Shown: positions 2,791 through 55,943 of the stretch, piece after piece
How the letters are laid out: each line of letters starts with the position of its first letter
How positions within the stretch are numbered: the first letter of the stretch is position 1
Source of the DNA: Octopus sinensis
Taxonomy: Eukaryota
Direction: 5' to 3'
DNA: 64,000 nucleotides
Assembly: GCF_006345805.1 (NCBI RefSeq)
Contig: NC_043014.1
Span: 25,730,001 to 25,794,000, forward strand
The notes under the pieces: model-generated
Database searches by the model: none
What the model was told of the DNA's origin: nothing
Seen by the model: only the letters and a program-made list of their open reading frames with translations
Position numbers and translations under genes: made by a program

Positions 2791-2817
2791 GTCTTCCATA
2801 ATTAATGAGTTTCTTCA

Positions 2818-8807: not shown

Positions 8808-9185
8808 TTAATCTCAGTTGACTGGCACTAGCTTGGTGCATCATGAATGGAAAAATTTCCTGATCAAAATCTTGAAAATCACTTCTGGCTTACATATTCT
8901 GTAACAGCATCCTTGCCATACACAACATGTCTTCTTACAGTTTTTCTGCCACTTACTTGCCTTATTGTAAAATAAAACATGAGGTGTCGATAATGTTTGT
9001 TTCAACTCTCATTTTCAATATGATCCCAAGCACACAAAATACATTTCTCATTACAAGCTTGCTTTGATCTATATTGTATTTAATATGTTCATATAGACAA
9101 AGAACAGGCTGAAGTTAGCTACTTTATATTAAAGTGCTTGAAGTTAAATGCTGACGAAAAACTAATGAACTTTTTTACTAACCAT

Positions 9186-12100
9186 ATCTTCATCGTTTAG
9201 CATCCGCTTTCCATGCTAGCATGGGTTGGACGGTTCAACTGGGGCCTGGGAAGCCAGAAGGCTGCACCAGGCCCAATCTGATCTGGCAATGTTTCTACGG
9301 CTGGATGCCCTTCCTAACACCAACCACTCTGTGAGTGTAGTGCGTGCTTTTTACGTCCCACTGGCACAGGTACCAGACAAGGCTGGCAAACGGCCATGAT
9401 CAGATGGTGCTTTTTACATGCCACCGGCACGGAGGCCAGGCGAGGCTAGCAACGACCACAATTGGATGGTGCTTTTTATGTGCCACCGGCATAGAGGACA
9501 GTCAGGGTGGTGCTGGCAACGGCCATGTTCGGATGGTTCTCTTATGTGCCACCGGCACTGGTATCACAGCTACAATTTCCATTGATGTTGATCGATTTTG
9601 ATTTTGATTTTCACTTGCCTCAACAGTTCTTCACAAGTAGAGTTTTGTGTCCCAAAAAGGAAAGGTATGCATAAGTGGACTGGCTACATCCCAGGTAGAG
9701 GCCACAGATTATGGTCTCACTTGTCCTGCCGGGTCTTCTCATGTACAGCATACTTCCAAAGGTCTTGGTCTCTAGTCATTTCCTCGGTGAAACCTAAAGT
9801 TCGAAGGTCATGCTTCACCACCACGTCCCAGGTTTTCCTGGGTCTACCTCTTCCACAGGTTCCCTCAACTGCTAGGGTGTGGCACTTTTTCACACAACTA
9901 TCTTCATCCATTCTCGCCACATGACCATACCAGCGCAAACGTCTCTCTCTGCATACCACAACTGATGTTTCTTAGGTCCAACTTTTCTCTCAGGGTACTT
10001 ACACTCTGTCGAGTATGAACACTGACGTTACACATCCATCGGAGCATACTGGCTTCATTTCTTGCGAGCTTACGCATGTCCTCAGCAGTCACGGCCCATG
10101 TATCACTGCCATGTAGCATGGCTGTTCGTACACATACGTCATACAGTCTGCCTTTTACTCTGAGCAAGAGGCCTTTTGTCACCAGCAGAGGTAAGAGCTC
10201 TCTGAACTTTGCCCAGGCTATTCTTACTCTAGCAGTTACACTTTCAACACACCCGCCCCCACCACTGACTTGGTCACCTAGATAACGGAAGCTATCAACT
10301 ATTTCTAGTTTTTCTCCCTGGAATGTGGCGGAAGTTGGTCTCTTTGCATTTTCAGTGTTTATTGCTCCTGAGCATCTGCCACATACAAAAACTATCTTCC
10401 TAGTTAGCCTTCCTTTGACTTTGCTGCACCTCTTATGTGTCCATAGCTTACACTTGGTGCATCTTATAGAGTTTCTACCTATGCCTTTTCTACAGATCGA
10501 GCAGGGCCATCTACCTGAAGGCGTTTGTGACTTGTCTACCTTCCTACTTATTAGGACTTTAGTTTTAGCTAGGTTTTACTCTAAGGCCCTTTGATTCTAA
10601 TCCTTGCTTCCACACCTGAAACTTCTCCTCCAGTTCTGATAGTAACTCAGCAATTAAAGCAAGGTCATCAGCGTAGAGGAGCTCCCAGGGGCATCTTGTC
10701 TTGAATTCCTCCGTTATTGCCTGGAGGACTATGATAAATAGGAGGGGGCTGATGACTGAACCTTGGTGGACCCCTACCTCTACCCAGAATTCTTCACTGT
10801 ACTTGTTGCCAACCTTCACCTTACTAGCGGCGTCCCTGTACATGGCTCGCACAACTCTCACTAACCATTCATCTATCCCTAGTTTCCTCATTGACCACCA
10901 GATAAGTGATCGGGGGACCCTGTCGAAGGCTTTCTCCATGTCAACGAAAGCCAGGTACAGGGGCTTATCTTTGGCTAGGTATTTCTCCTGCAGCTGTCTT
11001 ACCAAGAATATGGTATCAGTGGTACTTTTCCCTGGCACGAACCCAAACTGCATCTCAACTAAACTAACTCTCTCTAATTAGTTGGGCTATGACCCTCTCC
11101 GTAACCTTCATTACCTGATCCCACAGCTTGATACCTCTAATTATTTGTATCTAGGGCGTCACTTTTACCTTTGTAGCAGTTGACTATTATGCTGCTACAC
11201 CAGTCATTGGGTATGACTCCTTCGATATCACCTGGTTAACTATAGCCGACACTACCAGATATTTTGAGCATCTCTGCAGTTATTCCTGATGGGCCTGGGA
11301 CTTTCCCTGTCTTCATGCTTCTAATTGCCTTAACTACCAAGGAACTGTCAGCTCGGATAGCTGGTCCCTCTGTTTGGTCGACATTCAGCAGACTCTCTTT
11401 ATCCCATTCATTTTCCTTATTCAGCAACCTTTCATAGTGGCATCTCCAAACCTCTCTCTTTGCATCCTCATTTAGCGCAAGTGAACCATCATCCATGCGA
11501 ACACATTTCTCTCCTACTACATCACGATTCTCTCTCACACAGTCTTGCAACACGAAATACCTCAAGTCTTTGGTCCTCACGGCACAGAACATTGGCAAAT
11601 TTCTTCTTATCTGCTTCCCTTCTGGCTAGCTGTCTCCCAGCTTCTCTTTTGGCAGTCTGATACAATTCCCTGCTACCACCATTCTTCCAGTCCTTCCAAG
11701 CCTGTCTCTTTTCTCTAATAGCCCTGTCTACAACATTGTTCCACCACCACGTTATTTTAGGTCGAGAGGGGACTTTGCACCAACCACAGATCTGGTCAGT
11801 GGCTCTCAGCAGGTTGTCCCTTAGAGACCTCCAGTTGTCTTCTACCCCATGTGAAGCTATATCCCCTTCTACTTCGTCAAAAGCTTCAAGTAATATGTTC
11901 CTAAATCTCTGTCCATTCGCAGGATCTTTAAGCTTCCAGATCCTACTTCTCCATGTTGGTCATCCTCTTAGTCCTGATCCTAAAGTCACTAACTACCAGT
12001 CTATGTTGTGGGGTACATTCTTCGCCTGGGAAGGTTTTGGCATTTATAAGCAGCCATCTTTCCCTTTTCCTGGCAAGGATGTAGTCAATTTGGCTAGTAT

Positions 12101-16370: not shown

Positions 16371-16522
16371 AAGTGGGAGGATTCCTTGGAATTTCAGCAA
16401 GGCTAGGAAGTGGCTGGTGGGAGTGGGGGTAAAAATAAAATATGTAACTGGTGTACTGCAAAACAACAATTGGTTGAGTACCTCTGATCGATGACAAAAT
16501 ATACCAGAAAATATGTTTAATA

Positions 16523-17156
16523 CAGTACCATACAAAAGTCTTCAGCCACTTTAAACTATTGTAAATTTCTACTAATTGCCAACTTATAAGTGGATGTTTT
16601 GCATTGTTTTTTTTTTTTTTTGCAGATGAAACATTGGCCCTGTTGGAGTTATTTCCATACCTAATCATTATATTTTGTAGTAGGGGTTCCAAATGAGAGG
16701 GTAAGATGAGAGACGATCACCAAAAATGGCCGTGCAAAAGTTTTCAGCCACCTGACATAAACCAATCGAGATTACAGTGTTTTAAAACAGAAAAATATCT
16801 GTAATGAAAATTTATTACATAATGTTCATTTCAAGAAGTACATTGTTAATATTTCGTGTGGCTTCCCTTAGTTTGAATAATTGCTTTAATGTGTTTGGGA
16901 AGAGATGCATACAAATCCTTCACCATCTTCAAGATTGTATGGGTTCTTCTGACAAACTCTTCAGTTCTGTCCACATTTGCTTGATGTTATTTAAGTCGGG
17001 GCTCTGAGCTGGCCAGTCTTTCAATACAGTAACACCTTCATCAGCCAGACTCTGTTGATGAAAGTGTTACTGCAATGCGAAACATCCACTTATAAGTTGG
17101 CAATTAGTAGAAATGTACAATAGTTTAAAGTGGCCAAAGACTTTTGCACGGGACTG
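16523..17156 (-). mobile_element. Internally deleted Tc1-like element (TA-flanked, ~85-bp matching termini)
   Basis: TA|CAGTACCATACAAAAGTCTTCAGCCACTTTAAACTATTG.. is inverted at 17072-17156|TA; inner repeat ccgtgcaaaagttttcagccac at about 16730; the minus strand encodes DWPAQSPDLN and HIKAIIQTKGSHTKY*. Confidence 0.88.
16693..16700 (+). CDS. NAA50: Candidate first coding exon of NAA50 (ATG AGA GG, Met-Arg-Gly), tentative
   Basis: Only ATG-NNN-NN followed by GTAAG that I found upstream of exon 2; phase 2 fits exon 2 and gives MRGGRIELGD, comparable to human MKGSRIELGD. It lies within a Tc1 remnant, so it may be coincidental. Confidence 0.35.
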
Positions 17157-17601
17157 TATATTAATGTGGCCTAGAGGGGAAAAATGAATTAGTGACTAAA
17201 GTAATGCTTTTGTGTTGCTGATTTGGTTTTAATAAAATACTAGAGACACTTCTTGATCCTCAATGGAAAATTGCTTTAGTGCATGTTATGTATTAATGCT
17301 GCTAATTCCAGACATAAAGTATTTTAAGCATGCAGTGTAAGTATGGCTACAGAATGTAAAGAAAGTGTACAAACTATACAAACAATAGATTTTACATGAT
17401 TCCTCCATATACATGTATTGGGTTATTTTAAATTTTTGTGCATAAAATCACATTCATACACTGATAAACAAGTAGATATGAATTAGCTTTTCTGTTATTA
17501 TCAGCTTCTCTCTCTCTCTACAGTTTGATAAACTTCTTTTTTGATCATCACTACCACAGGTGGAACTAATGAGACTTGTGTTTTTCTCTGTTTGGTTACA
17601 G

Positions 17602-17738
17602 GGGACGTATTGAGTTAGGAGACATTACTGCCCATAACATCAAGCAGCTGAAACGCCTTAATCAGTATGTTTTTCCTGTAACATATAATGATAAATTCTA
17701 CAAAGATGTCTTGGAAGTGGGTGAATTGGCAAAACTTG
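17602..17738 (+). CDS. NAA50: N-alpha-acetyltransferase 50 (San/NatE catalytic subunit), coding exon 2
   Basis: ttacag acceptor, gtgag donor; encodes GRIELGDITAHNIKQLKRLNQYVFPVTYNDKFYKDVLEVGELAKL; 137 bp. Confidence 0.96.
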
Positions 17739-19944
17739 GTGAGTTTCTCCTTATAATTTCTGTTCTTATGAATAGCAATACACATGGCTTTGTCAAAGTT
17801 GTGATAAGGATTGGACAGTCTCTCTCTTCTTTGTGCTTTAAAAACTTTCCATTCTCTTGTTCCTTTGGACATGGCACTTAATTTAGATTGATTGCCTCAT
17901 TCAACTTGATTTACAAAAGATTCCATTTCACAGTTGAATGGTTACTTTAGAGTTATTAGGTGTAGGTATAGTTGTGTGATTGCAAACTTCACTTTGTAAT
18001 TATGTGATTTCACCTTGTAACACCTTGGAAAAGTGCCTTCTATATAACTGAAGCTGACTTGTTTACTGAATGAAATTAGTAGATAAAAACCATGTGAAGG
18101 CTCATTGTGTGTGCACAAACATTTATTTTCTGCATGTCTTACTTAGCACTGACAATGTTTGGGCAATATTGGTTTTATGTTTACATCTCCAGTAATGAGT
18201 CCTGTACCTCAATATGTGAAGATGAGTAAAAATACAAGAAAAAGAAGGGTTTGTGACAGGGAGGGTATCAGGTTGTAGAATACTGTCTCAGTAAATCTTA
18301 TCTAAACCATGCCAGGATGTAAAAGATAGAGAAGTTCAAACATTTTTTTTTTTTGTTTGTGTTTAGGTAAAGTAAACTTTTTGACAGCAACTTGATTTTG
18401 AATAGAAACTAAACAATTGAAAATGAGCAGAAAGAATATGATCAACAGTCTGAGAATGTTTTCATTGATATTTAATGTTTATTACTTAACAAAAATGGGT
18501 GTAGGCATGACTGATTTACAACCATGAATCCAGGCTTGATCTCATTGAGCAGCACTTTGGAGCAAGAGTTTTCTTTCATACCCTTATGTCCATCAATGCC
18601 TTGTGGGTGGAATTTCATATCTAGGTACTATACTGAAACCAGTTGTATTTATGTGTGTATGTATATCTTTTAGTAAGAAAATTGAAACCTAGTGTTTTTA
18701 AATAAAATTACTTTGATCACTCTTGGGATTGAAAATACAGTGAAGCAGTATAAAGTAACTGGATAGGATACTTGAGAGATAAGACCCTCTTATTTCTAAA
18801 GTTTTAAGTAAAAGTTGAGTGATGAAAACTGTATAGAAGCCCCCCAAATAGACTATCCCTGTTTTGGAATGGTGAACTTAAAAATCACCATTTGGCCTTT
18901 GGCTGATTTTAGCAGTACAAGCATATGGGTCTAGTCCCCAGTCTGAGGATCATTTCCCATCTGTCTCAGAGAACCTTAAGCAAAAATGTAGGACACTGCC
19001 CCTCTAAATAAGCTATGCACACACACACACACGTGTGCAAAATAGTTTGGTAACTGTTCTGATTTTAACATGCCTTTTACCTGCTCAGAGCCAAGTATAT
19101 ACCAATATGATGCAAAGTATTGGGTACTGCAGAGCAATTGACAAACCAAGTTTACAGTTTGGAATTCTTTTATTCTTGGTTTCAATTGATCTATTTTCTA
19201 TGAGAGCATTACTCATTATGTGACACTTTACTGGATGAGATATCCAGTGGGATTCAGCACAGTTTCTGTCCACCTAGTGTATGATATAAATTGAAAAACC
19301 AGTGCTTTTAAATACAATTGCTTTGTGGATTTTGTTTCACTTTGAGTTGCACAAACAGTATCACTCATGACTGAAACTTATTCAGTGAGATTGAACCAAG
19401 AATTGTGTAATTACAATACAAACTTCTTAGCCTCAAGGCTTCTATTTGTGGCCATTTCAATTCAGTTGTGTCACTAACATAAAAAACTTGATCATATTAC
19501 ATAAAAAATATTTCCAGTCAGTTGTGAGTTAGTGAGCTTATGTTTGACTAAATAATTTACAATATCTAGTTTTACCCCTTTTTTTATGCAGATTCAAATA
19601 CTGCTATGGTCAGTATTGACCTTCATCCATTTAGGATTATAGAAATATATTGGGTGAATTCAACTGTTTACTTTTTGTTTGTACCTCCTTAGTAAAGAAT
19701 TTGCATTATCATTATATCACTGATATAATGGTTTCTGATTATGCACAAGGCCAGCAATTTTGAAGGGTAGAGGTTGATACTATTGGCTTCAGTGCTTGAC
19801 TCATACTTTATTTTATCAATCCCGATAGGAGGAAAAGCAGAATTGATCATAGCAGGACCTGAATTCACAATGTAAAGAACCAGAACAAATACTATTAGGA
19901 ATTTTTCTAAAGCTCTAATGGTTCTGCTGTCTTGCTACCTATTC

Positions 19945-20150
19945 ATCATCATCATTCATATGTCCATGTTCCATGCTAGCATGGGTGGGACGGTACCACA
20001 AGTCAGCCAGGCCGAAGCCTGCATCAGACTTCTGTGACTGTTTTGGCTGGATTTTTACAGCTGGATGCTCTTCCTAACACCAACCACTCAGCAGAGTGGA
20101 CTTGGTGCTTTTTATGTGGTGCAAGCACAGGTGAGGTGAGTAGTGCTTTT
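19945..20150 (-). mobile_element. RTE 3' tail fragment in NAA50 intron 2
   Basis: catcatcatc..ccatgctagcatgggtgggacgg..gctggatgctcttcctaac. Confidence 0.75.
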
Positions 20151-20454
20151 TATGTGGATATCATTGAAATAATGAACATTGAATCTAAGAGGCCAATATT
20201 GCAGGTTATGTTCCTTGAATATTGATTACCTCTTCTTAGATATATGCTTACTGCCCAATGGGGAATTTGAACTAAAGAGGGTGAAACTGATTATCCAGTA
20301 TCCATCCACTAGGCTTTGTCACATAGTAATATATTATATATTGATATTTAAACTTGCCTTGTATAATTTACTTACATGTTGTAGAACTTTTGTCAATTGA
20401 TGATGTAATTCAATGCTAAAGTTTCTTTTTTTTTTTTTTTGTCTCATTTTCCAG

Positions 20455-20574
20455 CCTATTTCAATGACATTGTTGTTGGTGCTGTGTGTTGCCGAGTGGA
20501 TAACTCTGCAACACAGCGCAGATTGTACATAATGACTTTAGGCTGCTTATTTCCATACAGACGGCTGGGAATTG
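20455..20574 (+). CDS. NAA50: NAA50 coding exon 3
   Basis: ttccag acceptor, gtaag donor; AYFNDIVVGAVCCRVDNSATQRRLYIMTLGCLFPYRRLGIG includes the acetyl-CoA-binding RRLGIG motif; 120 bp. Confidence 0.96.
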
Positions 20575-21529
20575 GTAAGTTGTTTGTACACTCTACTGAA
20601 CACCATTCAATTAGAATATTGGCTTAAGACTGGTGTGGCTTATCTGATGCAATGTGTTCAAACCTCAATGCTTGAGCTGTTTTGTGACCTAACTTTTGAC
20701 TCATTCTATCTGAATATAGTTGCTATTCTCACTTTGTGGATGAGTGGTATTGGGATGTTATGTGGCTGTTAATTACTACACTCACAATGTTTTATTTTAC
20801 ATGCATATATGCAATAGTTTTATTTGTTTGTTGTTGTTTTAAATCTATTTTGATATGTATTATTAGGAAATGTCATTTTACACCTTGAAAAAAAAAAACC
20901 TTTCTAACCATTTTAACATAATGTGAGCATGGCAGCAACTGTGCATTACAGATTTACTTGTTCGGCACTGATTGTTACTAATCGTCAATTTTCTGATCAC
21001 AAGAATGTGTGAATGTTTATTCATTGGAACAAAACAACTTAGGTTTAGGACGTCTAGTATGACATTTATTACAACTGAATGTTGAATACTGTATTCACCA
21101 TTTTCAGTTGTAGTAAATGTTTTTAAATGTGAGATGGCTGAATGGATAGAATATTGAACTCCCTTTCTAGAAGTTGCATATTCAAATCTGCTACTGTCAT
21201 TTCATTGTTTCTAGGTTGGTACACTTTATATTGCCTCAGCTTACCTAGCTGTTAATAATATACAAAAGAATCTTTTCCAGCTTCATCTTGTTTTGTTACT
21301 GTTGGGTCCAAACCCTGATGCTAATTATGGTCTGTGTATGATGACTGTTATGCAATGGCCTAGTCCATGTTAAATTTGTTATGTGCAGGTGAGCCAGCTC
21401 TACCCATTCTTTAATTTCATCTGCAGCAGATCCTCAATGTAACAGGTTGATAGATTTGTATATTCTCACTGATAAAATATTAGTGACTGAAGCAGTATTA
21501 ATACCAAAAGGCAGTCTTGATCTCCAAAT

Positions 21530-22090
21530 TACTGCTGAAGGCTATCTTCATTTCCAACATTGTGTGGGTTGTATTAAAATACAGAATGCCTTTGATATCG
21601 ACTCATGGTGCATAAAAACACTTGTATTTGTATCACTGACAGACAAAAACTATCTGCTACGACTGCCAGAATTACCAGATCATATGATTTCACCTTACTT
21701 TTGGCTCCTCAGTAACAGATAGATGTCCAGCAGCAACATAACTGCTGAATCTCCCATCAACAAGCTCATATGAGAAAACCTTTCAAGCTGTTGCTGCTGG
21801 ACATGGCAATGAGGAGCCCATAGGACAAAATCATTATGTGATCTGGTACTTTCAGCAGTTACAGTAGACAATTCTCATCAATGATACAAATACGAGTGCT
21901 TTTATGCACCCCAAGTCCATATGTAAGGCACTCCTATGGTAAATAATGAAGTATTCTGTGTTCTAACACAACCTCCATGGAGATAAAGATTGCTTATCTT
22001 CAATTTAGACTTAATTTGTCAGGGACAGTAGTGACTGACAAAAAAGGTGGGGCAGTTGTAATAATGAAACTGGTCTGCCAACTATACACA
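21530..22090. repeat. Imperfect ~200-bp-arm inverted repeat with an adjacent Penelope-like RT motif, in NAA50 intron 3
   Basis: Perfect 16-bp core 21723-21738 / 21789-21804 with decaying outer complementarity; the flank at about 22027-22066 encodes VVTDKKGGAVVIM, similar to the PLE motif ADKGGAVV. Confidence 0.7.
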
Positions 22091-22741
22091 TTATTTGCAA
22101 ATTCTTTCTTTAAGGATTAAGGATTACCAGTGATATTGAAGAGTTAGAGTATCTTCCATTAAACTCAGTTTCTTTGAAATAAACTCTCTCAGATGTTTTG
22201 ATTACTCTTTTGTTTTTCTCCCTGCAGTTATTAACCAGAGATGCTTTACTGAACTATTTATATTATCTCTGACTATAGCATTGTAGATTCTAACTGATAC
22301 TTCTGAACAAACTTAACTTTTCTGTATTGACTATTTAGTAGCAACATTTTTTGTTATAATGTTCTGTTATTTTGATGACACTGTTTCCTAGTGTAGAAAA
22401 TTGAACTCCTGTTTCTCTCTTTGATTATTTAGGTTTATGTTCTTAGTTTTCTCTGCAGCCCTTAAATAAATTTTTATTTCCTCTTCTAAATCTTGTTACT
22501 TTATCTGCTGCCACATTGAGACTCTTCATTTCTGCCCTCATGGTTTTACTTTTAATGTCTTGCATTTCTCTAAACTTTTTGCCCTCCCTCTCCCACACGT
22601 TGAATAGATATTCAGTGGTGATCAGAAATAATCAATAGCAAGTACATACAATTTCAGAGATAAATTATTGAAAATGTACTCTTTTCCTTAAACCATTTTA
22701 GTAGCATATTTTTGGCTGTAAACTTTTTCTTTCATTTTCAG

Positions 22742-22808
22742 GCACAGTGATGTTGAATCATGTTTTAAAAATCTGTGAAGAAGATGGAAACTTTGATAAT
22801 GTTTTCTT
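22742..22808 (+). CDS. NAA50: NAA50 coding exon 4
   Basis: ttttcag acceptor, gtaag donor; TVMLNHVLKICEEDGNFDNVF; 67 bp; too short for the ORF track; phases join correctly. Confidence 0.95.
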
Positions 22809-24264
22809 GTAAGTATCTTCCTTGCTTTATATCATAGCATCAATATTATTGAGGCAAACCAGGGAGTGCCATTGTATGTATGACTGATTTAGTCAATAGT
22901 CAACATTTACTTACTAATTATGATTTTTACACCTGTTGTAATTTGCCATGTAAGGAGCAAGATAAGGCCAACAAAATTGTCTTATAGATATTAAGTAATG
23001 TATGTGTATCTTGGTTTTACAATAAAGTTCATGATGTTATGAGAGGTGACTAAAAAGATTAATGAAAAGAAGGCATCCAGCATGAAAAAGCAGTCGTAAT
23101 ATTTATGTAAATTAGGGGAAGTTGTGCTTATCTTTTGTTGTAAAATGTTCTTTAATATTGTGTGTAAATCATCAATATAATAATATTAATATGCCAATTT
23201 GTTTTTTGTACGTACCTGATGCATGTGTCACATTTAAGAGAAAGAAATTTTGTTGCTTAAAGATTTCTTGTAATTTCTGGAAGAGATTTGAAACCACCAC
23301 CTATGTGTTGTTTTACTACTTCTCAACACCCATGCCTACAGGTCCACTGAAGCAGCAACAATCTTAATGGGAAAATTTGATGTGTGTGCAAAGGAGAGAG
23401 GAAGTGAGAAGGAGTGGCTGAATTCCTTTGAATTCCTTTCTGTGATTGAACTGAAATTAACCCCTGGCTATTAAAGGCCCAACCACACACACACACACAC
23501 ATTTGTTTTAGGTCTTCTGCCTCTTTGAATTTGGCCATACACCAGATAATATGTTAAGTCTTATGTTCCAAAATTTAAATTTTGATTTTGTTTTAATTAT
23601 AAAATTACACCTCATTTAAAAAACTACTTTTGGTTTTCGAATACAGCCTTTTCTTTCTCTTTCTATATTTTTGTTAAGTTACAATTTCTCTATCTTGGTC
23701 TGGATTTTTCTAGTTTCTTGTATCATGTGAAAACATTAAAAAAAAAAAAATTAAATTCAGAGCCGAACAAAATCAAAAATATTCTATTTTTCCCTTTCCT
23801 TAATACTAACAAGAGCATAGTATGAGAGAGATTTGGCTGTTATTTCTTGCAAATTGAACAACCACATAGTCGTTCAATTGGCTCATTTGTTGATGTGCAT
23901 AAGTAAACAAAGACTAAGGCACATACACACACATATACATATATGAATGTGTCTGTGTTTGTCCCCACCACCACCATTGCTTGACAACCAATGGTGTGTT
24001 TGCGTCCCTGTAACTTAGCTGTTCAGCAGAGGAGACTGATAGAATAAGCACCAGGCTTACAGGGAATAACTCCAGGAGTCAAATGACTGAAACAAAAGAA
24101 TACAAGAAAAACGTTTCATACCACTAAAGCAAGAGGGTTCTCTGAATATGTATGATGTATTTTAAAGCTAAATAGTAATTCTATTTACGTTTGCGTAACA
24201 GATATTTTGGTTGGATTATATAGTTATCAGTTTTACCTTTCTATATTCTGTAACTGTCACAATA

Positions 24265-24465
24265 TACTTTTCTACTATAGGCCTGAAATTTTGGGTGGGA
24301 GAGGGCCAGTCAATTAGATCGACCCCAGTATGCAACTGGTACTTCATTTATCAACCCTGAAAGGCAGTGGACTGTGGCAGAATTTGAACTCAGAACGTAA
24401 AGACATGAAATGTCACTAAGCGTTTTGCCCGGCGTGCTAACTATTCTGCCAGCTCGCCACCTTTA
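24265..24465 (-). mobile_element. Second tRNA-derived SINE family, in NAA50 intron 4
   Basis: Reverse complement ggtggcgagctggcagaatagttagcacgcc..gttctgagttcaaattctgcc contains A- and B-box-like motifs; plus-strand relative at 33418. Confidence 0.75.
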
Positions 24466-24930
24466 ACTGTCACAATACAGAAACATTTCTCATGGCACCA
24501 GCATACAATTTACTGATACTTACATTTTTTATGGGTCCAACTAGTTATTATTATTATTGCCACTGTATTTTCTATTTTTTTCTTTCAATTGCAATACCAC
24601 CTTTAGTAAGATATACTTTGCCAGGTTATCAATCTTATCTTTAGAGTGTGAACTTTTATAATGTTTTGATTGGTTTGATATCCAGTCATTACCAGGTAGG
24701 TTTGTTTTTTCCTGACTACTGTTCCAAACTGAATTTGAACTAGGAAACTGATGGTAATCTGAGATGAAACTTAATGAAATATAGTGCAGATAAATATCAC
24801 TACTCCTATATGCTCTAAAGAGCAGGTTAATAGTCAGGAAATTACTAACTCATTTCAAGTGTTTAATTACTCCCCACTTCCTTCTTTGTAGCTAGCTTAC
24901 CTCTGGTGTGTGTCTTTTTATTGCTTGCAG

Positions 24931-25105
24931 ACATGTCCAAGTAAACAATGTTGGAGCAATAAAGTTTTATGAAAAATTTGGATTTGAAATAGTTGAAGAA
25001 AAGAAGAATTACTACAAAAGAATTGAACCAGCAGATGCATACGTTCTACAAAAAACTTTTACAAAAACCAAACAGCAACAAGCTTTACGCCGTATTGAAA
25101 AATAA
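24931..25105 (+). CDS. NAA50: NAA50 last coding exon
   Basis: ttgcag acceptor; [57 protein letters not shown] then TAA; possible polyA signal ATTAAA at 25292-25297. Confidence 0.96.
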
Positions 25106-30699: not shown

Positions 30700-32452
30700 T
30701 AAACTTAGGGGTAGATGAATGGTTAGTGAGAGCTGTGCAAACCATGTACAGGGACGCTGTCAGCAAGGTAAGGGTTGGCAACAAGTACACTGACGAATTC
30801 AGAGTAGAGGTAGGGGTCCACCAAGGTTCAGTCCTCAGCCCCCTCCTATTTATCATAGTCCTCCAGGCAATAACAGGAATTTAAGACAGGATGCCCCTAG
30901 GAGCTCCTCTGTGCTGATGACCTGGCTCTAATTGCTGAGTTGCTATCAGAACTAGAGAAGTTTCAAGTGTGGAAACAAGGATTAGAATCAACCAAAGTCC
31001 TAGTAAGTAGGAAGGCAGGCAAACCACAAATCCCTTCAGGTAGATGGCCCTGCTCAATCTGTAGTAGAGGCATAGGTAGAAACTCTATAAGATGTACCCA
31101 GTGTAAGCAATGGACACATAAGAGGTGCAGCAATATCAAAGGAAAGCTAACTGGGAAGAAAGTTTTTGTATGTGGCAGATGCTCAGGAGTAATAAACGCT
31201 GAAAATGCGCAGAGAACAACATCCGCCACATTCCATGGAGAAAAACTAGAAGTAGTTGATAGCTTCTGTTACCTCGGTGACCAAGTCAGTAGCAGGGGAG
31301 GGTGCGCTGAAAGTGTAGCTGCTAGAATAAGAATAGCTTGGGCAAATTTCAGAGAGCTCTTACCTCTGCTGGTGACAAAGGGCCTCATGCTCAGAGTAAA
31401 AGGTAGACTATGACGCATGTGTACGAACAGCCATGCTACATGGCAGTGAAACATGGACTGTGACTGCTGAGGACATGCGTAAGCTCGCTAGGAACGAAGC
31501 CAATATGATCCAATGGATGTGTAATGTCAGTGTGCATACTCAACAGAGTGTAAGTATCTAAAGAAAAGTTGGACCTAAGAAGCATCAGATGTGGTGTGCA
31601 AGAGACGACTGCACTGGTATGAGGATAGCTGTGTGAAAAAGTACCACACTCTAGCCGTTGAGGGAACCTGTGGAAGAGGAAGACCTGGGATGAAGTGCTG
31701 AGGCACAACCTTCGAACTTTAGGCCTCACCAAGGAAATTTCTCATGACCAAGACTTTTGGAAATATGCTGTGCATGAGATACCCGGCAAGCCAAATGAGA
31801 CCATAACTTCATGGCCTATGCCAGGAGCGTAACCAGCCCACTTATGCGTACCTTTTCCTTTTTTGGACACTAAACTCTGCTTGCGAAGACCTGTTGAGGC
31901 AAGTGAAATCAAAATCAAACTAAATGACTGGCATCCGTGCAAGCGGGGTGCAAAAAGCACCATACGAGTGTGATCGTTGACAGAGCGGCTAACCAGCTTC
32001 CGTGCCAGTGGAACATAAAAGGCACCATTCGAGTGTGATTGTTACCAGCATTGCCTTACTGGCATTTGTGCCTGTGCTAGCAGGGTGCAGAGAGCACCAT
32101 CCGAGCGTGATTGTTGCCAGAGCGGCTAACTGGCTTCTATGCCAGTGGCACGTAAAAGGCACCATTCGAGTGTGATCGTTACCAGTGTCGCCTTCCTGGC
32201 ACCTGTGCTGGTGGCATGTTTAAAAAGTTTTGAGCGAGGTTGTTGCCAGTACCGCCTGACTGGGCCCCGTGCTGGTGGCATGTAAAAAGCACCCCTCTAC
32301 ACTCTCGGAGTGGTTGGCGTTAGGAAGGACATCCAGCTGTAGAAACTCTGCCAGATCAAGATTGGAGCCTGGTGCAGCCATCTGTTTCGCCAGCCCCCAG
32401 TAAAATCGTCCAACCCATGCTAGCATGGAAAGCGGACGTTTAAACGATAATG
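30700..32452 (+). mobile_element. 5'-truncated RTE LINE (RT C-half, CCHC-like region, 3' UTR)
   Basis: GVHQGSVLSPLLF, CADDLAL, FCYLGDQ motifs; ends gcggacgtttaaacgataatg. Confidence 0.92.
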
Positions 32453-32845
32453 AACCCTGTGGAATTTTAGACATCATTCAATCTCCTTCATACAGAGAAA
32501 GATAAAGAAATTATCCCATGTTTAATGTTTTGTTGATCATCAGAGGGCAAGTATTCTTTCATTCACTGCCTACAAAGGAAATTTATAGCAACTTGCTATT
32601 TAAATAAGACGAAAGCTAGAACATAGATATAACAGGTTGATTGATGTGCATACCACACATTTGTTAGCAACAGGATTAAATAATAATTTCAAATTTTGGC
32701 ATAAGGCTAGCAATTTTGAGGAAGAGTGTAAGTCAATTACATCAACCCTGTGTGCTCAACTGGTACTTATTTTATTGACCCTGAAATGGTGAAAGGCAAG
32801 GTCAACCTCAGTGGAATTTAAACTCAAAACATAAACATAAACATA

Positions 32846-34060: not shown

Positions 34061-34387
34061 TAAAGACTCCGCCGGTTACGACGACGAGGGTCCCAGCTGA
34101 TACGATCAACGGAACAGCTTGCTCGTGAAATTAACGTGCAAAATGGCTGAGCATTCCACAGACACGTGTACCCTTAATGTAGTTCTCGGGGATAATCAGC
34201 GTGACACAGAGAGTGACAAGGCTGACCCTTTGAAATACAAGTACAACTCATTTTTGCCAGCTGAGTGGACTGGAGCAACGTGAAATAAAGTGTCTTGCTC
34301 AAGGACACAACGCGTCGCCGGGAATCGAACTCACTACCTTACGATCATGAGCCGAATGCCCTAACCACTAAGCCACGCGCCCTCACT
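34061..34387 (-). mobile_element. Complete third-family tRNA-derived SINE with 17-bp TSD
   Basis: TCACAGGTAATATATAA at 34044-34060 and 34388-34404; reverse-strand head has A box TGGCTTAGTGG and B box GAGTTCGATTC. Confidence 0.92.
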
Positions 34388-36200: not shown

Positions 36201-38267
36201 ATTATGGGGGACCACATTTTATTTCGGTTTGAACGGCAGTAAATTGCTATGATAACAATACCAAGTGCATTTAAAACTAAAAAATTAGCATTTGTTAACT
36301 CTAAAGCAAAAAAAAAACATTATAGTTTTTGGGTTCTCGAGGCCCAAAAAGTTGATTTTATAGTTTTGACACTTTTTAACCCTTTTGTGTTTAAACGAGC
36401 CAAAATCTGTTGTATCTAATTCCTCTACAAAATCCTTTAAAAAATAAACAAATCAAGTTAGTGAATTTTCATAGCTTTGAGATAATGTGAGAGCTTTTCT
36501 TCCAGAAAGCACAGAACTGAAAGAATAGCAAAATTAACTGAGGCGGATGTCAACAGAGAAAATACTGACTTCCATAAAGTGGAAAAATAAATGGGAGGAA
36601 AAAGTTGGTAAATATTTTGGTGTGAATGCAAATAGCTGTTACGTGGCAGCAGCCAAATATTTACTTTTCTGGAAAAAGGAGCCGTTTACACATGATTTTG
36701 ATGTCACATTCATTGAAAGCATGCAAAATAATCAGGAAAAGAAAAGACGACCCTGCAAAACAAAACTCCCTTGTGGGAAACTTTGAGGTCCCCACCACTC
36801 CTCCCACCTTTCCAGAAAAAAATGGCTTGTGGCAGGTTTGGAGGTCAGATACGTTGAATGCACCCCAAAAAAAAACTGGAAAAAATTAATCCACACCAAG
36901 GTACAAAATATTTACTGAAAGAATAAAACCATGAACCAATTATACCTGTATTTTAATCAATTCAAACTAATGTACCTCATCTTGAAAAGTGGCAAAATTT
37001 TTGTCAGTTGCCATCTAGGATAATTTTAGTAATAAATCAAACAGGTAAGATGCATTAAGAATTTCAATTTTAGTGTTTAACCATGTTATTGCTTTCACAC
37101 CTGTTAATTAAATCTACCTGCCCATAAAAACCAAATTTACTCAATAAGATCAGCTAAAATTACATAACTAAACCAATGGTATATAAAGCACCCGCTGACA
37201 AAATTTCAATTTGATTTGGTCAGCCCGAGACTATCGTAGAAGACACTAGCCTGACGCGTCACGCAGTGGGACTGAACTCGGGAAGCAAGCTTCTTACCAC
37301 ACAGACACTCCGTTACATTTTCAAAGAATTAAAGGTTTAACGATTAAAGAGGTTAACTTATCGATTAACAGTGCCCACCTCTGTATATATGCATAGAGAC
37401 GTCATAAAATACACATAATATGAATGTTAACGTATTAATTCACATTCTCCCCATATTTAATAACGAACCATGTAATCCACATTCTCGAAAACATATTTCG
37501 GATCTTTTCGATTTGAACGGCAGTTTTGGATCTTTTCGGCTTGAACGGCAGTTTTTAACATAATTTCTAGGTAACTAAAAAATTTTAAACTTCGTATACT
37601 GGTAGAATGTGTTTATAAAACATCTTTTTCTCTTGGCTTTATTGAGAAAATTCTATGGTTTGTAAGATATTTGTTGTTTTTTCTTCTTCAATTTCTACCA
37701 ATCAATGACGTCTATTGAGGTAAATAACATTCTGTGCCGTATGAATATGTCCCTCGTTTAAGAAACAGATTGGATTTAGGTACTTGTCTATTGTCGTGGT
37801 CCCGGTTTCTCACACGCGAATTCGCGCGCGCGCGCCAGACGTAGGTACTCGATACTCGAGATCCTACGAGGTGACTTGCGCATGCGCAGTACAGAATTCG
37901 CGCATGCGCGTTACCCCCCCCCACCCCTAAAAAAAAAGGTGTTGGATTTCACTAAAAATATATGTGTGTGTGTGTATATATAACATTTTCAATTTTACAC
38001 AAAAAAATTACATAGTCGCTTTCCTCGCGGATTTACAGATAAATGAATTAATTACTATTTTACAGAATAAAATTAATGAATTAATTATATAAATTAAATA
38101 ATTCTTGAAAATTAATTAATATTAATAATATTTTTTGAACAAAGTAAATAATTTATAAAACTTAGTTAATAATTTTTTTTACACAAACGCGAACGTATAT
38201 AATTTGTGAAACTTTTTTTTTTTACAGACGTATATAATTTGGTAAACTTAATGAATTAATTTCTTCT

Positions 38268-38684
38268 CATCATCATCATCGTTTAACGTCCGTTCTCCAT
38301 GCCAGCATGGGTTGGACGGTTCGACCGGGGATCTGGGAAGCCAGAAGGCTGCACCAGGCTCCAGTCTTATCTGGCAATGTTTCTACAGCTGGATGCCCTT
38401 CCTAACGCCAACCACTCCGAGAGTGTAGTGGGTGCTTTTTACATGCCACCCGCACAGGTGCCAGGAGAGGCTGGCAACGGCCACGGTCGGATTGGTGCCA
38501 GTCGAGGCGGCTCTGGCATCGGCCACGATTCGGATAGTGCTTTTTACGTACCACCAGTCCAGGGGTCCTGGCATTTGCCGGGTGCCACACTTGCCCCAAC
38601 ATGTCTTCGCAAGCAAAGGGGGTTGGCGTGGGTGCCTGTCGTGGGATGAGGTTCGATATCAACTTCGCTTGCCTCAACAGGTCT
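38268..38684 (-). mobile_element. RTE 3' UTR fragment inside the left foldback arm
   Basis: (CAT)4 + cgtttaacgtccg..gcctcaacaggtc. Confidence 0.9.
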
Positions 38685-39263
38685 TTGTGTATAAATGTAT
38701 AAATTTTTCGCACTAAATTCTTTCCGTAGAATTTATCAAAAAACGCGCAAAATTATTCCGTAGAATTTATCAAATTAAAAAACGCAAAATTAATATATTT
38801 TTTGAAATTGCAAATTATTTAGAATATAAAACAAATTAAATTAAATTTTAAAAATAAATGTCATATACTTATACTCTGTAAGGTACTGTGTTCACACTTC
38901 AATTTACTATTTTCTAGAAATGTTGCTTTTCTAATTGAAACAATTTTTCTCAATCTCCATTTAAAAGTCCATAATGCCTCTTGAGCCATATCAAAATGAA
39001 CAACTTTGAATTACGTGGTGGTGGTGGTGTGAGGTTCTAATTTTTTTTCTGATCTCTCTTTGCCCCCTCTTTATCTCGGTTGTTCATTCCGCTAATATTT
39101 AGAAAAATTTTCGCGCCCAATTTTTGTTGTCGCGGGAAAAGATGAACGATTTAAAATAAATATATCTTAATTGTAGTGTGAGAAAGTATATATATTCTGA
39201 TGACAAAATATATTATCTTTCAAAAACATCCCAAATTTATAGACTATATCGCGTAGGTTTAAG

Positions 39264-39331
<68 letters not shown>

Positions 39332-39768
39332 AGAGAATGAAACATCTTTCATCTGTCTCCCCACCACACCTCCATCTAGGGGGGCAAAGAGAGATCAGAA
39401 AAAAAATTAGAACCTCACACCACCACCACCGCCGCCACGTAATTCAAAGTTGTTCATTTTGATATGGCTCAAGAGGCATTATGGACTTTTAAATGGAGAT
39501 TGAGAAAAATTGTTTCAATTAGAAAAGCAACATTTCTAGAAAATAGTAAATTGAAGTGTGAACACAGCACCTTACAGAGTATAAGTATATGACATTTATT
39601 TTTAAAATTTAATTTAATTTGTTTTATATTCTAAATAATTTGCAATTTCAAAAAATATATTAATTTTGCGTTTTTTAATTTGATAAATTCTACGGAATAA
39701 TTTTGCGCGTTTTTTGATAAATTCTACGGAAAGAATTTAGTGCGAAAAATTTATACATTTATACACAA

Positions 39769-40185
39769 AGACCTGTTGAGGCAAGCGAAGTTGATATCGA
39801 ACCTCATCCCACGACAGGCACCCACGCCAACCCCCTTTGCTTGCGAAGACATGTTGGGGCAAGTGTGGCACCCGGCAAATGCCAGGACCCCTGGACTGGT
39901 GGTACGTAAAAAGCACTATCCGAATCGTGGCCGATGCCAGAGCCGCCTCGACTGGCACCAATCCGACCGTGGCCGTTGCCAGCCTCTCCTGGCACCTGTG
40001 CGGGTGGCATGTAAAAAGCACCCACTACACTCTCGGAGTGGTTGGCGTTAGGAAGGGCATCCAGCTGTAGAAACATTGCCAGATAAGACTGGAGTCTGGT
40101 GCAGCCTTCTGGCTTCCCAGATCCCCGGTCGAACCGTCCAACCCATGCTGGCATGGAGAACGGACGTTAAACGATGATGATGATG
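39769..40185 (+). mobile_element. Mirror copy of the RTE 3' UTR fragment inside the right foldback arm
   Basis: Same boundaries as the left copy in mirror image (coordinates sum to 78453 at both ends). Confidence 0.9.
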
Positions 40186-42727
40186 AGAAGAAATTAATTC
40201 ATTAAGTTTACCAAATTATATACGTCTGTAAAAAAAAAAAAGTTTCACAAATTATATACGTTTGCGTTTGTGTAAAAAAAATTATTAACCAAGTTTTATA
40301 AATTATTTACTTTGTTCAAAAAATATTATTAATATTAATTAATTTTCAAGAATTATTTAATTTATATAATTAATTCATTAATTTTATTCTGTAAAATAGT
40401 AATTAATTCATTTATCTGTAAATCCGCGAGGAAAGCGACTATGTAATTTTTTTGTGTAAAATTGAAAATGTTATATATACACACACACACATATATATTT
40501 TTAGTGAAATCCAACACCTTTTTTTTTTAGGGGGGGGGGGTAACGCGCATGCGCGAATTCTGTACTGCGCATGCGCAAGTCACCTCGTAGGATCTCGAGT
40601 ATCGAGTACCTACGTCTGGCGCGCGCGCGCGCGCGAATTCGCGTTTGCGAAACCGGGACCACGACAATAGACAAGTACCTTGGATTTATTTACATTTGTG
40701 AAGAAAAGATACCCTTCCCCCACCCCTAACCCTAAAAGAGATTGAAATGCAATAGATCGATTCTAGGGTCATAATTATGGGTGACAATTTCATATGACAC
40801 CGCTAGAAAAAACTGCCGTTCAAACCGAAAAGATCCCATATTTCTATAAAATGTTGGGTGTGGCTGTGGGGGGAAATTCCGAGCTCCCCCCCCCAATAGT
40901 TTTGTGGCATATTAGGTCAGCATAAATTCATTCAACGAAAAAAAAATTCGACGCCAATATTCCAAACGCATTCGCTAGTTCGCATGCATAGGTGATTTGT
41001 AACCCAACGCATAAAATGAGTGTGGATGTGGTCTCTCCACATACTAGAAATAACAGACAAGTCACTGAAGTGTTGAACATACACATCCATTTCTTTTTTA
41101 TCTCTCGCATTTGATAACAGATAACCTGGTTTGGGAAAGAGGCCAAAAATGGGTGGTGTGCGTATTCTTTGCCACCGCCGTATTTAGTAATATGGAGACG
41201 CTTTTGGAGTTAAGAATCTACTCCATCTTCTATATTCTGATCATTACTTTCCTCCCCACTTGTTTCGTTATTTCGCCAACGTACTTTCACGATGAAAATG
41301 AAAGTTTTTCCCGCTCCCTTGCCCCCATCCACTTAATCATGATAAAAATTCAATGATTTAATTAAAAGAGAAACAAGAATTAAAACTTATTAATGCATCA
41401 TCCTAGTGAATGGCTGGGTGGTGACTTTGCTGTTATCCCTGGCATGTCGGACGACCATATTAAGGCCATCTGAATGTGGTGTGATCAATGTTTGTTATAG
41501 GAAGGGTACCCAATATACTTAGGTAGATTTGTGACACTTGAAAAAAAAGGATGGGCGATCTTTCGGAATTACTAGAAATAACAGCCAAGTCTTTTTTGAT
41601 TTTAATTACACATTAACTAATACAAAAACGGTTGTGAAAAAACATTTCATTTTTCAAAATTCCAATTCTTACATATACAAAAGTATATTCAATCGACTTT
41701 TAACTTTCATTTGTGCATGCAGCTATTTCAAGCAGTTCAATAAATAAGATTCAATAAAATAACGGAACTCGAGACTTTACTAGTCAATGTACATTTCTGA
41801 ATTCAACATAAAGGGCAAGTATTTACTTAATCAAGAAATGTGTTTTCCACGCTTACCATCTCATCAGTAATATAACTTGAGAAAAATGTATATACTGCCA
41901 TTCGCAGAGTATTTAAATGAAATTTAATATTTTTCCGTCACTTTAAGCTGAGAAATTACTCAACTAGAGACGTGTATCTCGGATAATGCAGTCCTATATT
42001 CATTATTGCATTAAGAGACGAGATAATCACAGATGCGGAACAATTACAAACGAAGCAGATTTCATTTCCCAAGTTCCTATATAAAAATTCTACTTGTATA
42101 CCGAACTTTGAAAATATTAACCATTTCATTTTTCTCCGAAAGCCGAACTCAACACACATGACATCGATTTTCTACCAACAGCCAGTTTTCTCATACTGTT
42201 TGCTTTCTTGCACGTTATTTCGTTAAGGTTAAGTAAACATTGTCTCACCAACAAATCTATGTTCTAGCAAAAAATTAAAACGGGCTGAAAAAGGTCTTAA
42301 TACGCTTTAATAGCCATCACTCGAGATAATGTTAACAAAAGAGGTGTCTCGACAAGATGATCAACAGACATGACTAAACAACTAAGATCTATAAAGGTAA
42401 TTTCTGACAACATTAATTTAGTTGATTTTATTACTACCCACAAGGGGCGAACATAGAGATGTGGGGTCAGACATACGGATGGTTTTTACAAAAAATCGGA
42501 TTTAAAAATAACATGAAATTACAAGAATATACACAAAATCGAATGATGAAACAACATTAATTTAGTTGGCGCCAAGAAATTCAAAACAAAACTTATCAGG
42601 TATCATGGGAAATTTGGATTTTTTTTTTGTAATCTCGTTATAACGAGAACGACAACAAGACCTAAAGAGAAAGGTAGGGGGAAAGTTACGTTCGTACGAG
42701 GTGTTGCAACTATAGTTGTAAGCAATT

Positions 42728-42806: not shown

Positions 42807-43226
42807 ATGTCTGGACGAGGAAAAGGTGGAAAAGTTAAGGCGAAGCCTAAGACCCGTTCTTCGAAGGCTGGACTTCAATTCCCTGTTGGTCGAATCCATC
42901 GTTTGTTAAGAAAAGGCAACTATGCCCAACGTGTTGGTGCAGGAGCTCCTGTCTACTTGGCTGCCGTGATGGAGTATTTAGCTGCTGAGGTGCTCGAGTT
43001 GGCTGGCAACGCTGCTCGGGACAACAAAAAATCTCGAATCATCCCCCGTCACTTGCAGTTGGCTATCCGCAACGACGAAGAGCTGAATAAACTCTTGTCT
43101 GGTGTCACGATTGCTCAGGGCGGTGTTTTACCAAACATCCAAGCTGTCCTTCTTCCGAAGAAGTCTGCTGCCGCCGCTGTTTCCAAGAAGTCCGACAAGA
43201 AAGGGTCTCAATCTCAGGAATTTTAA
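42807..43226 (+). CDS. H2AX: Histone H2A variant H2A.X (139 aa, C-terminal SQEF), intronless
   Basis: Complete H2A fold ([59 protein letters not shown]) with an extended tail ending SQSQEF, the SQ(E/D)-hydrophobic PIKK motif that defines H2A.X. Confidence 0.96.
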
Positions 43227-52282: not shown

Positions 52283-52613
52283 AGATCTTTTCGGTTTGAA
52301 CGGCAGTTTTTTCTAGCGGTGTCATATGAAATTGTCATCCATAATTATGACTCTAGTATCAATCTATTGCATTTCAATCTGTTTTAGGGTTAGGGGGGGA
52401 AGGGAATCTTTTTTTTCTTCACAAATGTAAATAAACCCAATCTGTTTCTTAAACGAGGGACATTCATGCGGCACAGAATGTTTTTTACCTCAATAGACGT
52501 CAGTGATTGGTTGAAATTGCAGAAATTGAACACATTCTACCAGTATACGAAGTTTAAAATTTTTTTTTACCTAGAAATTATGTTAAAAACTGCTGTTCAG
52601 ACCGAAAAGATCC
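52283..52613. mobile_element. Uninterrupted copy of the GGATC-ended MITE (opposite orientation to the 37500 copy)
   Basis: TIRs AGATCTTTTCGGTTTGAACGGCAG / CTGCTGTTCAGACCGAAAAGATCC; flanks CACACATA / CATACATA are an 8-bp near-TSD within a microsatellite. Confidence 0.88.
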
Positions 52614-52666: not shown

Positions 52667-54310
52667 TCATCATCATCATCGTTTAACGTCCGTTTTCCGT
52701 GCTAGCACGGGTTGGACGGTTCGACTGGGGCCTGGGAGGCCAGGAGGCTGCACCAGGCTCCAGTTTGATCTGGCAGTGTTTCTACAGCTGGATGCCCTTC
52801 CTAATGCCAACCACTCCGTGAGTGTAGTGGGTGCTTTTTTCATGCCACTGGCACAGGTGCCAGGGGAGGCTGGCAGCGGTCATGATTGGTTGGTGCTTTT
52901 TATGTGCCACCGGCACAGAAGACAGTCATGACGGCGCTGGCATCGGCCACGTTCGGGGGTGCTTTTTACGTGCCACCGGCACAGCTATCACAACTACAAT
53001 TTCCATTTGATATTTACTTTGATGTTGATGTACTTGACTCAATATATCTCCTCAAGCACAGCAGGTCATGTGCCACCAGTACTGAAGCCAGTCAAGGCGG
53101 CACTGGCATCGGCCACATTCGGATGGTGCTTTTTATGTGCCGCCGGTACAGGTATCGTAACTACAATTTCCATTTGTTGTTTATTTTGATATTGATGTAC
53201 TTGACTCAATAGGTCTCCTCAAGCACAGCAGGTCACCCTACGATCTAAGGTAAGCACAGCAGGTCATTCTGCAATCCAAGGTACTTTGGATGGGCTGGGG
53301 CTATGCGAAACTGGTGCAGGAAGCAGCCCGGGTCTTTGCAGACACAGCATATCTCTAGAATCTCTGTCTTTTCGTCATTGCCTCTGTGAGGCCCAACGTT
53401 CGAAGGTCATGCTTGACTACCTCATCCCGTGTCTTCTTGGGTCTACCTCTCCCCCTGATACCTTCAACTGTTTGGGAGTGGCACTTCTTCACACATCTCT
53501 CCTCATCCATCTGCAGTACATGACCATACCAGCGCAAACGTCTCTCTTGCACACCACATCTGATGCTTCTTAGGTCCAGCATTTCTCTCAGGGTGCTTAC
53601 ACTCTGTTGTGTGTGCACACTGACATTACACATCCAGCGGATCATGCTAGCTTCATTTCTTTCAAGTCTACACATGTCCTCTGCAGTCACAGACCATGTT
53701 TCACTACCGTGAAGCATGGCAGTTCGCACACATGCATCGTACAATCTACCTTTCACTCAGAGCGAGAGACCCTTTGTCACCAGTAGGTGTAGGAGCTTTC
53801 TAAACTTTGCCCAGGCTATTCGTATTCTAATGGTGACACTCTTTGAGCATCCACCTCCACTACTAACTTGGTCACCTAGGTAGCGGAAACTATCAACTAC
53901 TTCTAGTTTCTCCCCCTGGAGTGTGATGGAATCTGTTTTCTGAGTATCTGTGGTGTCTGTTGCCCCTGTGCATCTGCTGCACATGAAAGCTATCTCATCA
54001 GTTAATTTTCCTTTGATGTTGCTGCACCTCTTATGCGTCCATAGCTTACAATGAGTACATCTTATGGAGTTTCTAACTACACCTTTTCTACAGATTGAGC
54101 AGGGCCACCTGCCCGAGGAGGTGTGTGATGAGGTCGCCTTTCTGCTTACTATAACTTTGGTCTTTGTTACATTTACTCTAAGGCCCTTTGATTCCAAACC
54201 TAGCTTCCACACCCGAAATTTCTTTTCTAGTTCCGGTAGTGATTCTGCGATGAGGGCCAGGTCATCAGCATAGAGGAGCTCCCAGGGGCAACCCGTCTTG
54301 AATTTCTCTG
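52667..54310 (-). mobile_element. 5'-truncated RTE LINE
   Basis: ORFs 53757-54362 (CPWELLYADDLAL..FRYLGDQ) and 53355-53756; 3' UTR with tandem units; (GAT)n tail at about 52667. Confidence 0.92.
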
Positions 54311-54334
54311 TGTATATATATATATATACATATA

Positions 54335-55943
<1,609 letters not shown>

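Follow-up and report, generated by a model that had tools for sequence, protein, structure and literature searches.

The stretch of DNA analyzed here (the window) comprises 64,000 nucleotides of the Octopus sinensis contig NC_043014.1 (assembly GCF_006345805.1, positions 25,730,001 to 25,794,000 of the forward strand), and contains at window positions 37779-40679 a foldback element of 2901 bp, 89% of which is made of two inverted arms. The element is intergenic, located 12.7 kb beyond the last coding exon of NAA50, whose coding exons occupy 17603-25084 on the plus strand (as found with the human protein as query), and 2.1 kb upstream of the start codon of H2A.X, an intronless gene at 42807-43226. 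These exon coordinates agree with the position between both genes that had been proposed in a first-pass annotation of the same DNA, made from the sequence alone.

The left arm (37779-39067, plus strand, 1289 bp) begins with the 5' terminus GGTACTTGTCTATTGTCGTGG and matches in reverse complement the right arm (39380-40679, minus strand, 1300 bp), whose 3' terminus is ...CCACGACAATAGACAAGTACC. Both arms are separated by a loop of 312 bp of unique sequence (39068-39379), with a (TA)33 tract at 39266-39331. The identity between arms was 98.2% over 1302 aligned columns, as measured by repeat search and self-BLAST, and when the left arm was globally aligned with the reverse-complemented right arm, 1287 bases could be paired, 8 of which (0.62%) are substituted. 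The same alignment has five indels, namely CGCG in a CG run, CA, AT, one homopolymer T, and GGCGGC in a GTG/GCC run. The outer 180 bp of the arms hold three of these indels and half of the substitutions. The near-perfect inverted arms described in the first-pass annotation were in this way recovered by BLAST, repeat search and global alignment, with the kind of differences that it had listed, and only its inner boundaries (39068 and 39378) had to be moved by 1-2 nt. The element ends as GGTACTTG.../...CAAGTACC, with GG at both ends (GGTACTTG...), and the terminal 21-mer is restricted to these two ends, with a chance expectation of 0. When the whole element was folded as a single strand, an energy of -2418 kcal/mol was predicted versus around -680 kcal/mol for shuffles, and 1281 of the 1289 bases of the left arm were predicted to pair with the right arm. 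Such a strong predicted fold is the expected outcome of an inverted repeat, and is no evidence of function.

The element is flanked by two perfect copies of a 9-bp target-site duplication, TTGGATTTA, at 37770-37778 and 40680-40688, and interrupts a host repeat that resembles a MITE (miniature inverted-repeat transposable element). The left half of this host repeat (~37528-37778) aligns to 52613-52432, the reverse complement of an intact paralogue, and its right half (40680-40836) also aligns to it. The uninterrupted paralogous repeat, at 52284-52613 on the minus strand, aligns over the insertion junction at 91-94% identity and carries the 9-mer only once, as a single TTGGGTTTA at 52432-52440 (minus strand), one base away from the approximate position (52433-52441) given before. 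The first-pass annotation had taken this copy as the empty site; it is uninterrupted and has one 9-mer, but it is a paralogue and not an empty allele. Regarding the host repeat family itself, the terminal sequence at the left end of the interrupted copy is duplicated in tandem, in units of 28 bp (37496-37551, GGATCTTTTCG.CTTGAACGGCAGTTTT), and the intact O. sinensis paralogue is missing, at 52525-52529, 66 bp that are kept in the Octopus vulgaris locus described below (L001:19741-19807) and are also present in the interrupted copy.

The orthologous locus of O. vulgaris (L001; assembly GCA_951406725.2, OX597833.1) was reached through the intronless H2A.X gene. As the O. sinensis counterpart we used L002 (GCA_006345805.1, CM016876.1), which is an exact substring of the window (32807-53226). 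The comparison involves one assembly per species. The O. vulgaris locus is colinear with the window, with flank identities of 99.7% and 98.95%, and at the site of the element the base equivalent to 37778 is joined directly to that of 40680 with a 9-bp overlap, giving the junction ...aagaaacagaTTGGATTTAtttacatttg... with a single TTGGATTTA at L001:7863-7871. The 9-mer is present as a single copy both at this orthologous empty site and in the paralogous MITE copy, which supports the earlier claim of a real 9-bp duplication generated by insertion. Inverted termini, a target-site duplication and an empty site with one copy of it are the marks of class II transposons, and the three of them were found. 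Judging from these alignments, an insertion in the O. sinensis lineage is far more likely than a precise loss from O. vulgaris, because members of the host repeat family are normally uninterrupted.

The two species differ at 66 of 20314 positions (0.32% substitutions) over 20.3 kb of orthologous sequence at the locus, and the divergence between arms, based on 8 differences, is not significantly above that expected for arms that were identical at a post-split insertion. There is also a hint that the donor copy had slightly diverged arms already, the element arriving from elsewhere as a ready-made palindrome. The element had been considered young, and both its absence from O. vulgaris and the low substitution divergence of its arms speak in the same direction. 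We regard a recent insertion mediated by a transposase as almost certain. The same comparison revealed a second species-specific insertion less than 4 kb from the foldback, a short interspersed element (SINE) of ~327 bp that looks tRNA-derived (34061-34387), is flanked by a 17-bp duplication (TCACAGGTAATATATAA) and is absent from the O. vulgaris site (L001 ~4483-4499).

The internal anatomy of the element is mirrored in both arms. Each arm starts with a CpG-rich outer domain of ~157 bp (37779-37935 on the plus strand, with its mirror at 40519-40679), built from repeated GAATTCGCGC and two GCGCATGCGC palindromes. The four occurrences of this 10-mer in the 64-kb window are all inside the two terminal domains (at 37878-37909 and 40545-40576), when 0 would be expected. 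The GCGCATGCGC palindrome resembles the NRF1/EWG-type binding motif. The terminal domain could be a transposase-binding or promoter region. The rest of each arm is AT-rich, and its only subrepeats are two-unit ones of 34-36 bp. Two subrepeats of 26 nt (TTCCGTAGAATTTATCAAA) lie with a 34-bp spacing at 38715-38774 (plus strand), mirrored at 39679-39738, and it is in these repeat families that ttccgtagaatttatcaaa appears twice per arm, as the first reading of the sequence had noticed. The central core (39005-39442) extends from the loop ~60 bp into either arm, and is conserved at another O. sinensis locus (L003:1521-1928).

Embedded in the arms there is a dispersed repeat of ~450 bp, at 38244-38690 on the minus strand (a strand assigned from its (ATG)n-type microsatellite end) and with its mirror at ~39757-40209. 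Relatives of this repeat with 72-91% identity were found in the window at 2799-3314, 9159-9534, 19943-20140, 31875-32453 and 52667-53152, and also at L001, L006 and L007. The window copies adjoin reverse-transcriptase fragments of long interspersed elements (LINEs) and have the (ATG)n-type microsatellite at their end, so that from its sequence the repeat may be described as SINE/LINE-tail-like, that is, as a putative SINE or LINE 3' tail; searches against tRNA and Rfam gave no match to it. As this foreign repeat is mirrored in both arms, the arms became mutual copies after its acquisition.

The element has no coding capacity and must be moved in trans. The Pfam search of its open reading frames (ORFs) gave no match in any of them, and a tblastn with octopus Merlin proteins found no transposase remnant, in line with the previous statement that it has no transposase ORF and supporting that the element is non-autonomous. 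Exact translations of 10 arm ORFs had 0 occurrences in the protein collection, which for eukaryotic assemblies covers annotated genes only, and the 72-aa terminal ORF, used as query of a homology search, gave no candidate either.

Relatives of the element were sought in loci encoding Merlin transposases and in further loci, which add up to ~190 kb of sequence from O. sinensis and O. vulgaris beyond the window and are biased to transposon-rich regions. A LINE endonuclease query, used to sample more octopus DNA, matched only three octopus proteins. One relative sharing the core was found there. This second foldback (FB2; L003:161-3272, O. sinensis CM016860.1) is 3112 bp long, lies on another chromosome and has arms that are 94.8% identical. 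Its core of ~440 bp is ~90% identical to window positions 39005-39442 when small indels and one (TA)n insertion are left aside. FB2 ends as GGTAAAATTACAG.../...CTGTAATTTTACC, starts with GGTA (GGTAAAATTAC), and is flanked by the duplication AAAAAAAT, which can be read as 8 perfect bp or as 9 bp with one mismatch. Except for the core and one segment of 46 bp, the arms of FB2 cannot be aligned with those of the window element, and they consist of tandem subrepeats of ~120 bp, with a palindromic repeat embedded at mirrored positions of the two arms. The centre is in consequence the conserved part and the arms the variable one, the opposite of what is seen in classic Foldback families. The "family" of the first-pass annotation stands as far as one relative with the same core, a common 46-bp arm segment and the GGTA start are concerned, but it does not extend to the remainder of the arms.

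A third GG-ended foldback (FB3; L007:3104-4756, O. sinensis) has the ends GGTTAATATAGGGCG... (GGTTAAT...) and arms made of tandem units of ~150 bp. It is flanked by the 8-bp duplication GACTTTCC, and an exact empty site exists in O. vulgaris (L006:3528-3552). A decayed relative of FB3 was located at another O. vulgaris locus, at ~L011:16126-16897. Further copies of the core of the window element were absent from L009-L011 (O. sinensis and O. vulgaris) and from L012-L014 (Octopus bimaculoides), and its terminal 21-mer gave 0 matches in metagenome contigs. The window element and its relative FB2 could represent a foldback lineage of octopus that is undescribed and currently mobile, with a conserved ~440-bp core that nucleates palindromes and with arms that are repeatedly rebuilt or homogenised. 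Repeated rebuilding of the arms would account for the foreign repeats mirrored in both arms, for the variability of the arms among copies and for the conservation of the loop, although we consider this proposal rather unlikely.

Other inverted repeats were also observed. A foldback-like structure with arms of 512 bp at 99.6% identity lies inside a (TA)n tract at L005:18628-20144, and a 1.76-kb difference between L006 and L007 was rejected as a transposon because it corresponds to a change in (TA)n length. In the window itself, the inverted-repeat elements at 54313-55934 and 16520-17159 look Tc1/mariner-like because of their TA-flanked CAGT-type ends, and the former has arms of 233 bp with 92% identity and is also located inside a (TA)n tract.

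The Merlin elements of the same genomes were located by using the O. sinensis Merlin transposase from the supplement of PMC8101967 as query of the protein collection and fetching the encoding loci. [quoted passage not shown] Their inverted ends of ~354 bp start with GG (GGCGATGTTTCG / GGCATAGTTTCG in L003), and 8-bp duplications were identified for two of them, GCAAATCT in L003 and CAAGGCTT in L005. These copies occupy three non-orthologous loci, two from O. sinensis and one from O. vulgaris, with 99.2-99.8% identity and the same 305-aa protein, from which it follows that a source of Merlin transposase has been active on the timescale of the foldback insertions. Each of them also contains an internal inverted-repeat pair of 344 bp (L003:4638-4981 and 9412-9755) around ~4.4 kb, possibly a nested long-inverted-repeat element. 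Two further ideas about these Merlin elements had to be given up. FB2 and the nearby Merlin gene do not form one element, since the comparison of paralogues sets the Merlin boundary at L003:4267, ~1 kb from the foldback. The motifs that the Merlin ends seemed to have in common with the foldback arms (TTCCGT, and ATCAGATTT..CCGT) were discarded in a shuffle test, in which the alignment scores were ordinary.

Having in mind that palindromes can arise from long-read chimeras and that only one assembly carries the element, we considered whether it could be an assembly fold-back artefact, or a one-off palindromic insertion mediated by repair and not by a transposase. Neither arm is present at the O. 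vulgaris locus, so that the palindrome is no inverted copy of local sequence; its termini are sharp (GG...CC) and its 9-bp duplication is perfect; the arms differ at 13 sites around a unique loop of 312 bp; and an independent foldback with a duplication of its own, from a different chromosome, has conserved this loop. Taken together these explanations are highly improbable, and the artefact in particular is very unlikely. For an element moved by a transposase, the question is then to which superfamily it belongs. Both Merlin and MULE/Foldback (Mutator-like elements, MULEs) had been named as candidates from the beginning, and both stay as such, with Merlin favoured. Merlin elements have 5'-GG termini, duplications of 8 or 9 bp and inverted ends of 24-462 bp, and O. 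bimaculoides has 191 matches to Merlin transposases, the most among the bilaterian species named (PMC8101967). The window element carries the terminal 5'-GG-3' and a 9-bp duplication, with 8(-9) bp in FB2 and 8 bp in FB3. The GG ends, the duplications of 8 or 9 bp in three foldbacks and the near-identical intact Merlin transposons in the same genomes make Merlin the best-supported assignment, to which we give a probability of around 0.6.

Several points weigh against this assignment. In the one Merlin family with defined ends, the terminal 70 bp resemble the foldback arms only at chance level, with 35-240 of 300 shuffles reaching the score, in such a way that termini in common with an autonomous IS1595-type element are missing as far as this family is concerned, and a BLAST of the same family (L003:4267-12996, GGCGATGTTTCG...) against the window foldback gave no match. 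Among the fetched loci there was no autonomous element with GGTACTTG... (GGTAC) ends, and the transposase-bearing copy with the same termini that the first-pass annotation had suggested looking for was not found there. An IS1595 transposase is also missing inside the element, as is expected if this is a non-autonomous derivative. PMC8101967 reports no Merlin ends longer than 462 bp, and MULE/Foldback elements are just as typically found with long inverted ends and 9 duplicated bp (PMC6446971, PMC3169594). Finally, the length of the duplication is ambiguous by 2 bp, its outer bases being complementary in all three foldbacks. The element could instead be a non-autonomous foldback of the Mutator/Foldback superfamily (MULE, Phantom-type) moved by a MULE transposase, with which its very long inverted ends and its 9-bp duplication agree. 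MULEs have duplications of 8-11 bp, mostly 9, and ends that are often hundreds of bp long, and they are known in molluscs (PMC6446971). In the foldback-type element Tm1 the duplications are of 9 bp and the ends are composite and include tandem repeats (PMC3169594), and the arms of FB2 and FB3 are made of such subrepeats, in units of 120-150 bp. The window element, by contrast, is almost devoid of them, with just 2 units of 34-36 bp where arms built largely of tandem subrepeats would be expected. The duplication is of 8 bp in FB2 and FB3, just as in the Merlin elements of the same genomes, all three foldbacks start with the GG that is a hallmark of Merlin, and no MULE transposase turned up among the fetched loci, where no search aimed at one was made. 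A MULE origin is on these grounds possible but doubtful.

The ambiguity of the duplication leads to another alternative, a superfamily with a shorter duplication (P/Galileo-like or Dada-like), with AGG...CCT termini and 7 duplicated bp. In the window element the inverted repeat enters the duplication by one base (A...T; 37778-37835 with 40623-40680), and the same occurs in FB2 and FB3. As the outer bases of the duplication (T...A) are complementary, the junctions can also be read with the shorter duplication and the AGG...CCT termini. The complementarity holds for three of three foldbacks, T..A at 37770-37778, A..T at L003:153-160 and G..C at L007:3096-3103 (a chance of ~1 in 64), and may mean that the target preference is symmetric or that the boundary of the element was placed one base too far inwards. 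Galileo, from the P superfamily, has foldback-like long inverted ends (PMC3573991, PMC3688188), which would favour such a reading. However, the implied duplications would be of 7, 6-7 and 6 bp and the first bases of the termini A, T and C, which fits no single known superfamily, and a symmetric target preference equally explains the complementary outer bases. P-type ends begin with CA, not NGG. The P superfamily combines duplications of 7-8 bp with CA-type termini, and the ends found here are GG or AGG, which leaves this option as quite improbable.

The element is best explained as a non-autonomous class II transposon of the cut-and-paste type, with foldback architecture. The complete palindrome was inserted into the MITE-like repeat in O. 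sinensis, at about the time of the split from O. vulgaris or later, with a staggered cleavage of the target giving rise to the 9-bp duplication. As to the transposase responsible and the origin of the palindrome, we infer that a trans-acting DDE transposase, probably Merlin (IS1595-type), would bind the terminal domain at both ends and would excise and reinsert the element. Both ends would represent one and the same transposon end, hence their identity. The palindrome would be older than this insertion, and could have been formed either when one transposon end and the sequence next to it underwent an inverted duplication or by arm-to-arm conversion. The embedded SINE/LINE-tail-like repeat would have been gained by one arm before the arms became copies.

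These data provide clean evidence of very recent movement of DNA transposons in the common-octopus species complex. Within the ~40 kb compared, two GG-ended foldbacks and one SINE of O. sinensis are missing at the exact O. vulgaris sites, which hints that several GG-ended foldback lineages, along with Merlin elements, have been mobile since the divergence of both species. Such insertions can be used as presence/absence markers to distinguish O. sinensis from O. vulgaris. Long perfect palindromes are also potential sites of genome instability and of assembly error. If the element is transcribed, a hairpin RNA close to H2A.X could be produced, the effect on the host being only potential, and cruciforms, hairpin RNA, small RNAs and editing are all possible consequences. 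Were the nucleating-core lineage real, species-specific perfect hairpins of ~1.3 kb would be scattered near genes and, if transcribed, would offer substrates for RNA editing or small-RNA pathways in an animal whose A-to-I editing is known to be extensive. A literature search, with Repbase and Dfam outside its scope, found no description of foldback or Merlin-derived elements in cephalopods.

Non-autonomous transposons of the foldback or long-inverted-repeat type are well known in many eukaryotes, and the window element is ordinary in kind. It resembles long-inverted-repeat MITE-like elements and hairpin RNA loci in being non-coding, in having inverted ends and a duplication, and in its predicted near-perfect hairpin of ~1.3 kb if transcribed, but with 2901 bp it is too long for a MITE, which are commonly under ~800 bp and of high copy number. 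Galileo has arms of ~1.2 kb, a 7-bp duplication, CA-type termini and a THAP-containing transposase. This Drosophila element is comparable in having long foldback-like arms outside the FB superfamily and a structure that is highly variable between copies (PMC3573991, PMC3688188). The foldbacks of the Mutator/Phantom lineage (Drosophila FB; Meloidogyne Tm1, PMC3169594) are similar in the 9-bp duplication, the very long arms, the short loop and the mostly non-coding copies, the length and content of whose arms differ from one copy to another, a similarity that the tandem subrepeats in the arms of FB2 and FB3 reinforce. Unlike them, the window arms consist mostly of unique sequence plus the embedded dispersed repeat, and the duplications of its relatives are of 8 bp. 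When compared with non-autonomous Merlin elements, eukaryotic relatives of IS1016/IS1595 (Feschotte 2004, summarised in PMC8101967), the arms of 1.3 kb are ~3 times as long as the longest Merlin ends reported (462 bp), but the element shares with them the GG termini, the 8-9-bp duplication and potentially long inverted ends, in a host genus rich in Merlin transposases and in genomes that harbour intact, near-identical autonomous copies.

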